64,000 bases of DNA, taken from the NCBI GenBank assembly GCA_002269645.1, contig NIVC01002332.1, forward strand, positions 33,847 to 97,846, given 5' to 3'. Position numbers and translations under genes: made by a program. Source of the DNA: Macrostomum lignano (lineage: Eukaryota). Positions 44,685 to 50,481 of the stretch are shown in pieces; the first letter of the stretch is position 1, and the number at the start of each line of letters is the position of its first letter. Below the pieces are notes generated by a model, which saw nothing but the letters and a program-made list of their open reading frames with translations, made no database searches and was not told where the DNA came from.

Positions 44685-47600
44685 ATGGCAACTGAGGATG
44701 CAAGCGCCTCGTCGAATGCAACTGCCTGTACTGTACTCACGTGGCAGGAACGAAATGAACAAGGAGAGAGGTAATGATTAATGCTTCGCGACATGTCTCG
44801 ACCAATATGCTTTTTATGGCTTTTATCACTGTTACGAGCTAAATTTATTTCAACGTGCAGATATCTCAACTGGGCTAGCAATCATGCTCACGTGAAACTT
44901 CATACCACAACGGTGCCAGATTGCATATTACCCAAGGGTTATCAATGCATTCTGCACGATGTTCAGGTCTGTAGCATAACAGCTTTCTGCTTTTTCATGA
45001 GTACAAGATGGCCGACTTAAGGTTGTTTATTGGCGACCCTCTTAACCCCCCACGCCGCGGCTGACTAATCAAAGTTGTTTATTGGCGACCCTCTTACCCC
45101 CCCCACGCCGCGGCTGACTAATCAAAGTTGTTTATTGGCGACCCTGTTACCCCCCCCACGCCGCGGCTGACTAATCAAAGTTGTTTATTGGCGACCCTCT
45201 TACCCCCCCTCCCTACGCCGCGGCTGACTAATCAAAATTGTTTATTGGCGACCCTCTTACCCCCTACGCCGCGGCTGACTAATCAAAGTTGTTTATTGGC
45301 GACCCTCTTACCCCCCCACGCCGCGGCTGACTAATCAAAGTTGTTTATTGGCGACCCTCTTACCTCCCTACGCCGCGGCTGACTAATCAAAGTTGTTTAT
45401 TGGCGACCCTCTTGAACCCGCCGCGCGGCTGACAAATTAATTATTATATTTTCAGTGGCGCTGGTCTAATGTACATTACGACTGTCCATAAAAAAGTTTT
45501 TTATATTAATTCTCTTAAAGTCACTAAATTAACTGTTCATTGCTAAGAAACTGAAAGAAGAGCAAGAGCAGGGGACCAAGCCAAGAGAGGGGTTCAAGAG
45601 GGACCTGCCCCCCCAAAAAAAATGATGGCGCCCACAATTATAGTACGAGTATATCCGAGTATGTAGTAGTAGTTCAGAGAGGTGCAGTCTCCATCATTTG
45701 TATTTCTTCCTGAGCACGCATGCATACCGTGCCGTTAGGTAAAAGTCAAGCACGGGCCAGACGATGCCGTTTACGATCGGCACGCCGATCTGCGTAAAAT
45801 GGTTGCCAGGGGCAACACGGTTCTGGAGGTCCGACTACAAGGAAAGATGCATCGCGATGAAGGCGCAGGCGACAGTAAAGCCAGCTGCCTTCAGTCGGCT
45901 CCGCCTGGCACCTACGTAGCTTTAAAAGCGTTGAAAAAGTTCACCGGAGGTTCTGGCGATGACGATGACAGGTCCGATTGCGTTGCAGATCAGGTGAGCA
46001 CGGGGCTTGTTGAGTCTAGTTAGTTAGTTAGTTAGTTATTTGGTTAGTTAGTCAGTCAGTTGGTTAGGCAGTTAGTTAGTTAGTTAGTTAGTTAGTTAGT
46101 TAGTTAGTTAGTTAGTTAGTTAGTTAGTTAGTTAGTTAGTTAGTTAGTTAGTTAGTTAGTTAGTTAGTTAGTTAGTTAGTTAGTTAGTTAGTTAGTTAGT
46201 TAGTTAGTTAGTTAGTTAGTTAGTTAATTAGTTAGTTAGTTAGTTAGTTAGTTAGTTAGTTAGTTAGTTAGTTAGTTAGTTAGTTAGTTAGTTAGTTAGT
46301 TAGTTAGTTAGTTAGTTAGTTAGTTAGTTAGTTAGTTAGTTAGTTCGTTAGTTAGTTAGTTAGTTAGTTAGTTAGTTAGTTAGTTAGTTAGTTACTTAGT
46401 TAGTTAGTTAGTTAATTTAGTCAGGAGATTAAAGGTCGTACCTTCATATGTATCAGCATGCTTGTAAAATTTCCACCCGCAGGTGTGGCACCAGTACTTT
46501 TCCAAGCCAATCGCCTCGGCAACCCGGCTAGTTCGAACTCGCAAAGCCAACGGCGAGGCGCTGCACGTGGCCGTCATTCGACTGGGCGGTGTGGACTACT
46601 TTTTGGGCGGATCAAAAAACACTCATATTTTGTTTAGGCAGTTCGGTAAGTATATAATTGCATTAGTTACTAGGGTCTCAAAATTGGTTACTAGGCTATT
46701 ACTAGGGACACAAAGATGGTTACTGAAGGCACCAGATGATTACTAGTGTCGCAAAACTTCCACAAACGATTACTACCATCGCAAAAATGGTTACTAGGGT
46801 CGTAAACAGGATGTTATGGAAATGGTCTGTAGAACCGTTACTGTGGGTGTAAAATGGTTGCTATGGGCGCAAAGTTAGTTACTGTGGACGCAAAAACGGT
46901 TACTATGGACGTAAAATTAGTTACTACGGCCGAATAAATGGTTGCTATAGGCGCAAAAATGGTTACTATGGCCGCAAAAATGTTTACTACGGCCGACAAA
47001 ATGGTTGCTGTAGGCGCAAAATGGTTACTATGAAGACAGAAATGGTTAATATGGATGCAACAATGGTTACTATGGACGCGAAATTGGTTACTATGGACGC
47101 AAAATGGTTGCTATGGTTGCAATTAGATGTGATATTAATTATATGATTGTTTGATTCCTCCTTCCAACCAGAGGATCTGCAGCATTTCACCCACGACAGG
47201 TGCCGAGTGGCTCGCAAATTTTGTGCAGATTTTCTGTGTTACTTTGACCAGCTGCCAGCCGACAACCGCAAGGCATTTGTCGACTATTTGAGGGAACAGT
47301 TTGTGACAGCTGTGTTTGAGATACTGTACAGTGATCATCAGCACATTGAACTGCTCACTAATAAAGTGTAAGTTTGCATTTCATCAAGGTTGTTTCTTAA
47401 TTAGGCCATGCTCGTATACGTCAATGACGCCAAGATAGACCTCAATAAAAACCAAGATATAAGACCTCAATAAACACCAAGATAGACCTCAATAAACACC
47501 AAGATAGACCTCAATAAACACCAAGATAGACCTCAATAAACACCAAGATAGACCTCAATAAACACCAAGATAGACGTCAATCAACACCAAAATAGATCTC

Positions 47601-50481
47601 AATAAACACCAAGATAGACCTCAATAAACACCAAGATAGACCTCAATAAACACCAAGATAGACGTCAATAACCACCAAGATAGATGTCAATCAACACCAA
47701 GATAGACATCAATAAACACCAAGATAGACCTAATAAACACCAAATATAGACCTCAATAAACACCAAATATAGACCTCAATAAACACCAAGATAGACGTCA
47801 ATCAACACCAAGATAGACCTCAATCAACACCAAGATAAACGTCAATCAACACCAAGATAGACCTCAATAAACACCAAGATAGACCTCAATAAACACCAAG
47901 ATAGACCTCAATGACATCAAGATATACCTCGATAAACACCAAGATAGACTTCAATAAACACCAAGATAGACCCTCAATAAACACCAAGATAGACCTAATA
48001 AACCCCAAGATAGACCTCAATAAATACCAAGATAGACCTAATAAAAACCAAATATAGACCTAATAAACACCAAGATAGACCTAATGAACACCAAGATAGA
48101 CCTCAATAAACACCAAGATAGACCTTAATAAACATCAAGATAGACCTTAATAAACACCAAGATAGACATCAATAAACACCAAGATAGACCTCAATAAACA
48201 CCAATATATACCTCAATAAACACCAAGATAGACCTCAATGACATCAAGATATACCTCGATAAACACCAAGATAGACTTCAATGACACCAAGATAGACCTC
48301 AATAAACACCAATATATACCTCAATAAACACCAAGATAGACCTCAATGACATCAAGATATACCTCGATAAACACCAAGATAGACCTCAATGACACCAAGA
48401 TAGACCTCAATGACACCAAGATAGACCTCAATGACACCAAGATAGACCTCAATGACACCAAGATAGACCTCAATAAACACCAATATATACCTCAATAAAC
48501 ACCAAGATAGACCTCAATGACATCAAGATATACCTCGATAAACACCAAGATAGACCTCAATGACACCAAGATAGACCTCAATGACACCAAGATAGACCTC
48601 AATGACACCAAGATAGACCTCAATAAACACCAATATATACCTCAATAAACACCAAGATAGACCTCAATGACATCAAGATATACCTCGATAAACACCAAGA
48701 TAGACCTCAATGACACCAAGATAGACCTCAATGACACCAAGATAGACCTCAATGACACCAAGATAGACCTCAATGACACCAAGATAGACCTCAATGACAC
48801 CAAGATAGACCTCAATAAACACCAATATATACCTCAATAAACACCAAGATAGACCTCAATGACATCAAGATATACCTCGATAAACACCAAGATAGACCTC
48901 AATGACACCAAGATAGACCTCAATGACACCAAGATAGACCTCAATGACACCAAGATAGACCTCAATGACACCAAGATAGACCTCAATGACACCAAGATAG
49001 ACCTCAATGACACCAAGATAGACCTCTTCATTTGAACTGCACTTTATTTCAGGCCAATTCCGAAGTTCATAACGTTCACAAGTCACGACATAGACAGCGT
49101 GAGCATGTCTTACATGCCGCCAGATTCGGCCATAGACTTGGCCAGGGACAGTTTCGGATTGGATCCGACTAGCTACGAAGTCTGCGAGCCTTCGGAATTT
49201 GAATCCGTCTGCGAACTGGTAGATAGCATAAATTGTTTTTAAATGTTTTTATTGTCTGTTTAACTATCGATGCTTTAAAGTGAAAAGTTAATCATTATCA
49301 CTAACTTGGAAAAATCGCCCCTAGAATTAATCGCCCCTGAAAAAAATCTCTGCTAGGAAAATCGACCCCAGGAAAAGTATCTCTTAGGAAAAATCACCCC
49401 TAGGAAATATAGCCCCTAGAAAAATCGCCCCTAGGAAAATCGCCCCTAGAAAAATCGCCCCTAGGAAAATCGCCCCTAGGAAAATCGCCCCTAGGAAAAT
49501 CGCCCCTAGAAATATCGCTCATAGGAAAAACCGTTCATAGGAAAAACCGCCCCTAGGAAAATCGCCCTTAGAAAAATCGCCCCTAGGAAAATCGCCCCTA
49601 GAAAAATCGCCCCTAGGAAAATCGCTCATAGGAAAAACCGTTCATAGGAAAAATCGCCCCTAGGAAAATTGCCCCTAGGAAAATCGCCCCTAGGAAAATC
49701 GCTCATAGGAAAAACCGTTCATAGGAAAAATCGCCCCTAGGAAAATTGCCCCTAGGAAAAACCGCCCCTAGGAAAATCGCCTCTAGAAAATTCGCCCTTA
49801 AGAAAAATCTTTCTTAGGGAAATAGCTTACAGGAAAAATCGCCACTAGAAAAAATAGCCTATGAGAAAAATCGCCCCCTAGAAAGAAATAGAGCTCTTGA
49901 GAAAGAATCTTATGTAGATTAATTATTCCTGTATATAATGATCGCCAAAACAGAATCACCCCCAAAAATTACCTGTAAAAGAATCGCCCTATCAAATATT
50001 AGCCATGGAAAAATTCAACCACCAGCGTTGTTAATCTATTCTAAAAACTTACTAAGAAAACTTGCACCACCGGCAGATCCGCCGCGGCCACGGCTACGAA
50101 GGCGAAGTGCTGTACTTTATCGACGCATCAAACGAAGTGATCGGCTTGTTAAAAAAGAAAACCGCCTGGTACATTCTGATCCGAGCACTGCGCGAAAAAA
50201 TCAAATCAGCCGCCTCGTTAGGCGCGAAACGACCCGGCCAATTCGATGCCAATATGCATCAGAAAAATATTCATAAAAGAATTCGCGAGATACAGAATTG
50301 GCTCGGCCTGAGCAGCGAGATTACTCAACGGTGGCAGCAGATCGGAGCTGATTTGTTGAACTTTTGCGTTCGTCGTTTGTCTACGCAGAGAGATCAGTTC
50401 AAGGATTTGGTGTTTAATCAGTTTCCAGTTGTTTGGAAACAGTTTCTGGACGAGACGGGCACTGATGATAGCGTGTTTTGA
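44685..50481 (+). CDS. Putative stand-alone ATP-dependent RNA ligase (T4 Rnl1/Trl1-like nucleotidyltransferase), 7 exons, 458 aa
   Basis: Exons 44685-44770, 44861-44966, 45739-45993, 46483-46645, 47172-47367, 49053-49218 and 50077-50481. All are GT-AG and phase-consistent (1377 nt). Motifs in order: VARG, ALKKFTG, RKANG (46543-46554), GGSKN, VFEIL..DHQHI, YEGEVLY, LKKKTAWY. Confidence 0.75.
45020..45435. repeat. About 52-bp minisatellite in ligase intron 2
   Basis: Unit GTTGTTTATTGGCGACCCTCTTACCCCCCCACGCCGCGGCTGACTAATCAAA, about 8 copies. Confidence 0.92.
46017..46420. repeat. (TTAG)n microsatellite in ligase intron 3
   Basis: About 100 copies. Confidence 0.97.
46665..47120. repeat. About 22-bp degenerate minisatellite AAAATGGTTACTATGGACGC in ligase intron 4
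   Basis: GGTTACTA recurs. Confidence 0.85.
47435..49026. repeat. 21/22-bp minisatellite CAAGATAGACCTCAAT(AAA/GA)CAC with higher-order structure in ligase intron 5
   Basis: About 70 copies. A variant triplet block recurs near 48200, 48310, 48480, 48630 and 48820. Confidence 0.97.
49310..49880. repeat. 16-17-bp minisatellite GAAAATCGCCCCTAG in ligase intron 6
   Basis: About 30 copies. Confidence 0.92.

Follow-up and report, generated by a model that had tools for sequence, protein, structure and literature searches.

In this work, a real and intact member of the BfRNL/DUF7920 family was found in a 64,000-nt stretch of the genome of the flatworm Macrostomum lignano (contig NIVC01002332.1, positions 33,847 to 97,846; hereafter, the window, with positions counted from its first letter). 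The gene is very probably the counterpart of the stand-alone RNA ligase of the lancelet (BfRNL). The best explanation of the evidence, and a probable one, is that its product is a sealing RNA ligase that would need a 2'-phosphate (2'-PO4) on one of the RNA ends and would rely on healing enzymes acting in trans. The gene structure, the family, the predicted fold, the conservation of the ligase motifs and of a His-Arg-Arg triad, the stand-alone architecture, and the ancient intron positions were all established directly.

The ligase gene occupies positions 44685-50481 of the + strand in seven exons, with all introns of the GT...AG type, and the joining of the exons over the read region 44000-51200 gives a coding sequence (CDS) of 1377 nt, which corresponds to 458 codons plus TGA. 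Because of an in-frame TAA at 44667, this open reading frame (ORF) cannot begin before the ATG at 44685. The translation was 100% identical, over its full length, to PAA63062.1, deposited as 'hypothetical protein BOX15_Mlig013642g4, partial [Macrostomum lignano]'. The GenBank model begins at 44682 and is labelled 'partial' (5'-partial CDS), and an AG dinucleotide is present at 44677-44678, 6 nt ahead of the ATG. These two features may reflect spliced-leader trans-splicing of the ligase mRNA, with which they would fit. The exact GT-AG model and the match to PAA63062.1 bear out an earlier interpretation made from the letters of the window (hereafter, the sequence-only reading), which had proposed a 7-exon ORF of 458 residues. 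Its further points, namely that the motif strings are collinear and that the ORF list breaks the gene into pieces, agree with what was observed: every quoted string was found in the proposed order, and the fragmentation is seen in the six-frame ORF list. In the translation, VARGN lies at residues 86-90, ALKKFTGG at 128-135, RKANG at 169-173, GGSKN at 191-195, VFEILYSDHQHI at 251-262, EGEVLY at 332-337, and LKKKTAWYILIRALREK at 349-365. The GenBank contig with PAA63062.1 (NIVC01001876.1) is only 92-98% identical in DNA to the window (compared over 34685-60481), and its gene span is 5631 bp compared with 5800 bp in the window. Therefore, the gene is represented in the window by a different haplotype, paralogue or assembly. 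The 90% cluster to which the protein belongs contains at least two more M. lignano copies, which makes at least three gene copies in the species and is consistent with its duplicated genome. One UniProt entry of M. lignano is already named 'RNA_lig_T4_1 domain-containing protein'.

By searching 5.8 billion proteins, 161 homologues were obtained at E<=1e-3, nearly all of them with Pfam PF25536 (DUF7920). Given these homologues and the identity to PAA63062.1, the ORF is far beyond chance. The M. lignano protein itself carries PF25536. When 1.84 billion cluster representatives were searched with a family profile, it scored 534 bits, and 1655 proteins passed E<=1e-3, of which 283 also passed E<=1e-30. 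The closest non-self match was a Branchiostoma protein (P0002; E 1.9e-94, 42% identity, 96% of the query covered), whose cluster contains B. floridae XP_002604648.1 (2008 genome model) and UniProt C3YGD8. The named relatives listed comprise 120 of the 161 homologues. Among these matches are molluscs, a chiton, nemerteans, a bryozoan, an annelid, a rotifer, hemichordates, the lancelet, a tardigrade, collembolans, copepods, barnacles, and decapods. Cluster look-ups add the choanoflagellate Salpingoeca infusionum, a testate amoeba transcriptome, a Symbiodinium-like dinoflagellate, and two chytrids. No DUF7920 member from vertebrates, insects, nematodes or cnidarians was noticed among the named matches listed, which is an impression only. 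Pfam PF09511 (RNA_lig_T4_1) is recorded on two of the 120 relatives listed and not on the M. lignano protein of the window. The sole direct profile match of this protein was a weak one to PHROG 562 (T4 Rnl1; E 0.0066, residues 234-370 only), and a search of NCBIfam with it found nothing.

The lancelet enzyme BfRNL was described as a stand-alone, 2'-PO4-dependent ligase working with a separate polynucleotide kinase/2',3'-cyclic phosphodiesterase (PNK/CPDase) (Englert et al., 2010, PNAS 107:16834, cited after PMC10946426, PMC3400036, and PMC4408790). It strictly needs the 2'-PO4 and complements yeast trl1-delta together with KIN-CPD (PMC10946426, PMC4408790). Furthermore, BfRNL and the separate BfPNK/CPDase were reported to join tRNA halves in vitro and to complement yeast trl1-delta (PMC10946426, PMC4090602, PMC5434554). 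A review supplement lists BfRNL as gi 260818956 and states that Pfam RNA_lig_T4 does not pick up its family; the same holds for most of DUF7920. The Branchiostoma DUF7920 protein (XP_002604648.1 / C3YGD8) is very probably the published BfRNL, because it has a stand-alone architecture, a Trl1-like fold and weak similarity to Pfam Rnl1, and because it is the sole such Branchiostoma protein that surfaced in the searches. The sequence-only reading had implied an uncharacterised heal-and-seal route, and this claim is not supported, since the M. lignano protein belongs to the family of this almost certainly known lancelet enzyme, for which a separate PNK/CPDase is published. Both proteins lack fused KIN and CPD domains, carry DUF7920, have three introns in common, and contain all the ligase motifs and the His-Arg-Arg triad; both animal hosts presumably also have RtcB. 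The M. lignano ligase differs in coming from Platyhelminthes, in its shorter N-terminus (458 versus 484 residues in total), and in two lineage-specific introns.

The assignment of the protein to the ATP-dependent RNA ligases of the Trl1/Rnl1 type, as made in the sequence-only reading, is supported by the agreement of the predicted structure with the profile-profile register. The AlphaFold2 model computed on the family alignment has a mean predicted local distance difference test (pLDDT) of 88.8 and a predicted template modelling (pTM) score of 0.89, with only the N-terminus and an acidic loop poorly defined. Like Trl1, it would be two-lobed, with an adenylyltransferase lobe rich in beta-strands and a C-domain made up of helices only (residues 355-452). 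With this model as the query, Foldseek against the PDB gave the fungal Trl1-LIG-KIN 9r3w first (E 2.5e-10), next the C. glabrata Trl1 adenylyltransferase domain 9qw7 (template modelling score, TM, 0.69 on target), and then T4 Rnl1 9do4 (E 3e-8), followed lower down by archaeal and Naegleria RNA ligases and then by DNA ligases and capping enzymes. The lack of a nucleotidyltransferase fold, which would have spoken against a ligase, was thus not observed, as Trl1-LIG and T4 Rnl1 were returned for the model. The features of the ligase superfamily found in the M. lignano protein are motif I KxNG, the collinear motifs Ia, III, IIIa, IV, and V, and the predicted nucleotidyltransferase fold. The motif IIIa assignment for (K)FITFT is by position only.

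Conservation was counted in a 29-sequence family alignment with the numbering of the window model. In the N-terminal part, the invariant residues are R88, K131-F132-x-G-G-x-G-D, K170-x-N-G (motif I), and G-S-K-N (motif Ia). R88 (in VARGN) and K131-F132, all in exon 3, are the predicted N-terminal R and K-F elements of the Rnl1/Trl1 ligases, and the GGxGDxD residues that follow K131-F132 form the acidic loop of low pLDDT. In the middle part, E253 (motif III), Q260-H261, and F274 are invariant, and in the C-terminal part, E332-G-x-V (motif IV), K350-x-K352-xx-W-Y (motif V), R360, and R363. The triad candidates H261, R360, and R363 are thus kept in 29/29 relatives. By aligning a 62-sequence family profile with Trl1-LIG in hhalign, a match with Prob 92.9% and E 3.7e-7 over 340 columns was obtained. 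The template was made of the PDB sequences of C. glabrata and C. thermophilum LIG, recovered from phmmer output; a yeast Trl1 ligase-domain sequence served as phmmer bait only and never as the template. The pairs (DUF7920 = Trl1-LIG) are KANG=KANG, GSKN=CSKH, TAVFEIL=TAVAEYC, EGEV=EGFV, KKK=KYK, and RALR=RQWR, with ARG set opposite ARGLF and KF opposite DKFF. In the same alignment, H261 stands opposite the histidine of EEHIL, and R360 and R363 stand opposite the arginines of RQWR. In the fungal enzymes, the triad (Cth H227/R334/R337, Sce H193/R295/R298) binds a sulfate mimicking the terminal 2'-phosphate, and its mutation slows RNA adenylylation 60- to 580-fold (PMC11404444, PMC12440814). It was also shown to enforce the 2'-PO4 specificity of C. 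thermophilum LIG (PMC11404444).

We hypothesize that the M. lignano enzyme acts in three steps. Lys170 of KANG would react with ATP to form ligase-AMP, the AMP would move onto the 5'-PO4 RNA end (AppRNA intermediate), and the 3'-OH of the other end would then attack, so that the break is sealed. Since the H261/R360/R363 triad is kept, the 3'-OH end probably must carry a 2'-PO4, as is the case for the Trl1 of fungi and the RNL of plants and of the lancelet. No kinase or phosphodiesterase domain is encoded before the ORF ends at residue 458, and therefore the enzyme would contribute the sealing step of a heal-and-seal pathway. Neither a P-loop nor an HxT motif was found in the ORF, in agreement with the absence of a fused kinase/CPDase noted in the sequence-only reading. 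Healing, by a 5' kinase and a 2',3'-cyclic phosphodiesterase, would come in trans, and the junction 2'-phosphate would be taken off by a Tpt1-type enzyme. Halves of tRNAs are candidate substrates, as are other RNAs whose cleavage leaves 2',3'-cyclic-P/5'-OH ends. We infer that the M. lignano protein is catalytically active and needs the 2'-PO4, and also which RNAs it would join in vivo; for the 2'-PO4, the basis is the triad and the published work on BfRNL.

Independent support for the heal-and-seal role comes from domain fusions in two metagenomic relatives, P0294 (902 residues) and P0248 (732 residues). In both, a DUF7920-type ligase precedes a P-loop kinase (with GVGKS or GLGKS) and a pair of HxT motifs; for the kinase region of P0248, a match to the fungal Trl1 KIN domain in 9r3w was obtained (E 1.3e-3). 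Their predicted architecture is tripartite and Trl1-like, with a 2H phosphodiesterase at the end, on the DUF7920 ligase branch. Other fusions were observed in further relatives. The copepod version of the ligase has a C-terminal B3/B4 domain; this group comprises P0051 (709 residues; Neocalanus flemingeri), P0066, and many marine metagenome and metatranscriptome proteins of 670-710 residues. The closest similarity of the copepod domain is to human LRRC47 (E 2e-20) and the phenylalanyl-tRNA synthetase beta subunit, and the fusion hints at possible tRNA- or ribosome-linked substrates. In P0221 (856 residues) and P0189 (791 residues), from marine metagenomes that include a TARA sample, the ligase is followed by a C-terminal domain with a GxGxG motif resembling S-adenosylmethionine (SAM) methyltransferases (ELGAGVGLVS).

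Several results weigh against the assignment of the M. lignano protein to a BfRNL-type, 2'-PO4-dependent sealing ligase. The activity of this protein and of every protostome member is a prediction. No member of the Branchiostoma cluster is named 'RNA ligase', so it is from the properties given above that we infer its identity with BfRNL. No PNK/CPDase gene was found within 10 kb of the ligase gene in the GenBank contig, and a protein search with the kinase-CPD half of P0294 gave five metagenomic proteins only and no animal ones. With the narrower 29-sequence profile in local mode, hhalign reached only Prob 21% and E 1e-3. Plain sequence and hidden Markov model (HMM) searches against the PDB sequences, with the M. 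lignano protein, its relative P0091, and both family profiles, gave no ligase; the tie to Trl1 therefore comes from the predicted structure and one profile-profile alignment.

A more far-reaching version of the sealing-ligase assignment would regard DUF7920 as an ancient, separate eukaryotic branch of 2'-phosphate-dependent ligases that was retained beside RtcB in many invertebrates. The branch would be tripartite in some protists, B3/B4-fused in copepods, and methyltransferase-fused in marine protists. In Macrostomum, it would serve a distinct pathway of RNA repair or tRNA-half re-ligation, e.g., in stress or in the stem-cell/regeneration system, with non-orthologous healing partners. We consider this version unlikely.

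By comparing the M. lignano protein with the characterized ligases, the best structural match is the fungal Trl1-LIG (S. cerevisiae, C. glabrata 9qw7, C. thermophilum 6n67/9r3w). Both have the adenylyltransferase lobe and the all-helical C-domain, the KANG motif I, and the collinear motifs Ia, III, IV, and V, with the triad His after motif III and RxxR after motif V. However, the identity is only ~16%, and the triad residues of the DUF7920 proteins are shifted by one residue, standing nearer to motifs III and V than in fungi. Moreover, unlike Trl1, the M. lignano ligase has no fused kinase/CPD, and it has an extra N-terminal region and the acidic GGxGDDDD loop. The canonical tripartite Trl1 or plant RNL was ruled out, as there is no fused kinase and 2H cyclic phosphodiesterase, and the protein resembles the stand-alone BfRNL and Mucorales RNL instead. 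The Mucorales RNL is likewise monofunctional, with the healing enzymes encoded elsewhere and a 2'-PO4 dependence, predicted or shown, via conserved arginines (PMC10946426, PMC10946435). PSI-BLAST readily finds the Mucorales enzymes, which are closely homologous to the fungal Trl1 LIG, whereas the M. lignano protein belongs to the separate DUF7920 branch.

T4 Rnl1 (PF09511; 9do4) has in common with the M. lignano protein the ligase superfamily, the N-terminal R and K-F elements, and the KxKxxWY pattern of motif V. It differs in structure (TM-score 0.43-0.52, root-mean-square deviation 13 A), in having no triad, and in its inability to ligate 2'-PO4 ends (PMC12440814). The partner of T4 Rnl1 is T4 Pnkp, which leaves 2',3'-diol ends. 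Human RLIG1 (C12orf29) is an ATP-dependent 5'-PO4 RNA ligase found in animals. None of the named relatives listed is from a vertebrate or named RLIG1, and among the top 50 Foldseek matches in the PDB there was no entry described as RLIG1. The M. lignano protein is probably not T4 Rnl1 proper, and on these matches RLIG1 belongs to a different family.

It could still be supposed that the protein is a generic Rnl1-like repair ligase, which would seal 2'-OH,3'-OH / 5'-PO4 breaks in the way T4 Rnl1 does in tRNA anticodon loops. The place of T4 Rnl1 among the best structural matches, the match to PHROG 562, and the shifted position of the triad residues would fit such an enzyme. On the other hand, Trl1-LIG is ahead of T4 Rnl1 by both E-value and TM-score, the invariant His-Arg-Arg triad is aligned by hhalign, and relatives are fused to a 2H CPDase, which makes 2'-PO4 ends. 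The strict 2'-PO4 requirement of the lancelet enzyme of the same type (PMC4408790) points in the same direction. We find this explanation quite improbable, and equally so its corollary that no 2'-phosphate would be needed and that, consequently, there would be no Trl1-style CPD or Tpt1 partners.

According to another explanation, the nucleotidyltransferase fold was kept without RNA sealing, so that the protein would be an adenylyltransferase of another substrate or a non-catalytic RNA-binding protein. The sealing activity is a prediction from sequence and model, the family is filed as a domain of unknown function, and both the family-specific N-terminal region and the invariant acidic GGxGDxDD loop are without an assigned role. 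However, the catalytic residues of motifs I, Ia, III, IV, and V are invariant over very wide taxa, which argues for retained ligase chemistry. The predicted model also has the Trl1-like all-helical C-domain, which is required for end joining in CthLIG (PMC11404444), and the fusions to a kinase and CPD, together with the copepod B3/B4 domain as in the phenylalanyl-tRNA synthetase beta subunit, point to RNA or tRNA work. A loss of sealing is therefore very unlikely.

Regarding the origin of the gene, exon models were built for Branchiostoma (9 exons), Haliotis (14), and Hypsibius (7), and the introns were mapped on the protein alignment (A1). Intron 1 (column 94, phase 2) and introns 4 (column 280, phase 1) and 5 (column 351, phase 2), the latter two flanking exon 5, are common to Macrostomum, Branchiostoma, and Haliotis, and intron 6 (column 421, phase 0) is common to Macrostomum and Haliotis. 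Thus, at the same codon and phase, Macrostomum has 4/6 introns in common with the abalone Haliotis and 3/6 with Branchiostoma, the remaining 2/6 being lineage-specific, and all the Branchiostoma introns (8/8) are common to Haliotis. The chance of four matches out of six is ~1e-7, as a rough estimate with ~1400 possible positions and 13 Haliotis introns. Because the intron sharing is beyond chance, the intron-rich gene predates the protostome-deuterostome split; the M. lignano ligase is an old animal gene and not a recent viral import.

Viral relatives of the ligase do occur. They include, from BFVD, Panulirus argus virus 1 (A0A6G9HDT9; 26% identity, TM 0.79), an unnamed 457-residue viral protein (23% identity), and giant-virus proteins, with A0A8K1ZQR6 also among the BFVD matches. 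A 405-kb IMG/VR contig (L005 5001-5840) encodes a further relative with 29% identity. The lobster virus and some giant viruses thus encode full-length structural relatives of the ligase branch, with TM 0.77-0.79 and 23-29% identity. The neighbour-joining tree was poorly resolved, with the animals monophyletic in 2/200 bootstraps and with long-branch behaviour of Palaemon. In this distance tree, P0171, from the Pyxidicula operculata transcriptome in EukProt ('amoebozoan'; 38% identity), pairs with Macrostomum; animal RNA from prey or contamination in the transcriptome might be its source, and not an amoebozoan gene. Owing to this poor resolution, no conclusion was drawn from the tree, and the intron positions were relied on instead. 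The sequence-only reading had suggested a viral or protist origin with a later gain of six introns. Such a recent acquisition in the flatworm lineage, for which the viral relatives and the lack of a clean animal clade might be invoked, is scarcely credible in view of the shared intron positions, the spread of the named matches over many invertebrate phyla and a choanoflagellate, and an identity to animal relatives (32-43%) above that to viral ones.

The exons and the tandem arrays in and beside the gene are listed in Table 1.

Table 1. Exons of the ligase gene and tandem arrays in the window
Feature	Position	Strand	Content
Exon 1	44685..44770	+	ATG at 44685; encodes residues 1-28 plus 2 nt
Exon 2	44861..44966	+	N-terminal region, to LHDVQ
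Exon 3	45739..45993	+	VARGN 45802-45816 (R88); ALKKFTGGSGDDDD 45928-45969 (K131-F132); family-specific acidic loop next
Exon 4	46483..46645	+	motif I RKANGE 46540-46557; predicted adenylylated Lys170 46543-46545; motif Ia GGSKN 46606-46620
Exon 5	47172..47367	+	motif III VFEIL (E253, 47318-47320); His261 47342-47344, candidate 2'-PO4 triad histidine
Exon 6	49053..49218	+	beta-strand KFITFT (probable motif IIIa, invariant F274); variable linker
Exon 7, motifs	50077..50481	+	motif IV YEGEVLYF 50095-50118; motif V LLKKKTAWY (K350, K352 at 50152-50160)
Exon 7, rest	50077..50481	+	R360 50182-50184; R363 50191-50193; all-helical C-terminal domain (predicted); TGA 50479-50481
Tandem array, 52-mer x7.4	45022-45413		within the region of introns 2-6
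Tandem array, (TAGT)x99	46017-46414		within the region of introns 2-6
Tandem array, 21-mer x12	46857-47116		within the region of introns 2-6
Tandem array, 22-mer x74	47430-49026		within the region of introns 2-6
Tandem array, 15-mer x32	49311-49806		within the region of introns 2-6
Second 15-mer x32 array	44058-44530		immediately upstream of the ligase gene

Introns 2-6 (44967..50076) are 772, 489, 526, 1685, and 858 nt long, and each consists mostly of one different tandem array. The arrays around and in the gene give rise to long spurious ORFs on both strands. Directly 3' of the ligase gene, there is an ORF of 221 residues (50771-51436, - strand), which weakly matches the N-terminal helix-turn-helix of IS630-family (Tc1/mariner-like) transposases (E 0.0026). 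Its peptide ending ...REKSPLSVGWRF is repeated in the neighbouring + strand ORF 51135-51365, and the 221-residue ORF is probably a transposon remnant, as judged by sequence. In the GenBank contig NIVC01001876.1, genes for RRM, ATG13, and profilin are the only ones in 10 kb on each side of the ligase gene. The scan of the window for tRNA genes and Rfam families found none, and the scans for bacterial-type promoters, terminators, and AATAAA were uninformative for a eukaryotic ligase gene. In several gastropods, DUF7920 members of normal length are named 'actin-binding protein IPP(-like)'. The upstream, divergent neighbour of the Branchiostoma DUF7920 gene (L001 1-1346) is a BTB/BACK/Kelch gene, and this adjacency is absent from the 10-kb flanks of the Haliotis and Hypsibius DUF7920 loci. 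A possible source of the 'IPP' misnaming is an earlier, fused gene model.

The M. lignano ligase extends a known enzyme family and leaves the picture for specialists unchanged. The breadth of the family in protostomes is documented here: intact members occur in many protostome phyla, but they are filed as DUF7920, 'uncharacterized' or 'actin-binding protein IPP', so a correction of the annotation would be useful. The kinase-CPD, B3/B4, and methyltransferase fusions of the relatives are independent hints toward RNA or tRNA substrates. The only characterized animal enzyme of the DUF7920/BfRNL type is that of the lancelet, an animal that is hard to manipulate. M. lignano is amenable to RNA interference and transgenesis, and therefore the flatworm copy offers a practical route to the role of this ligase in vivo.

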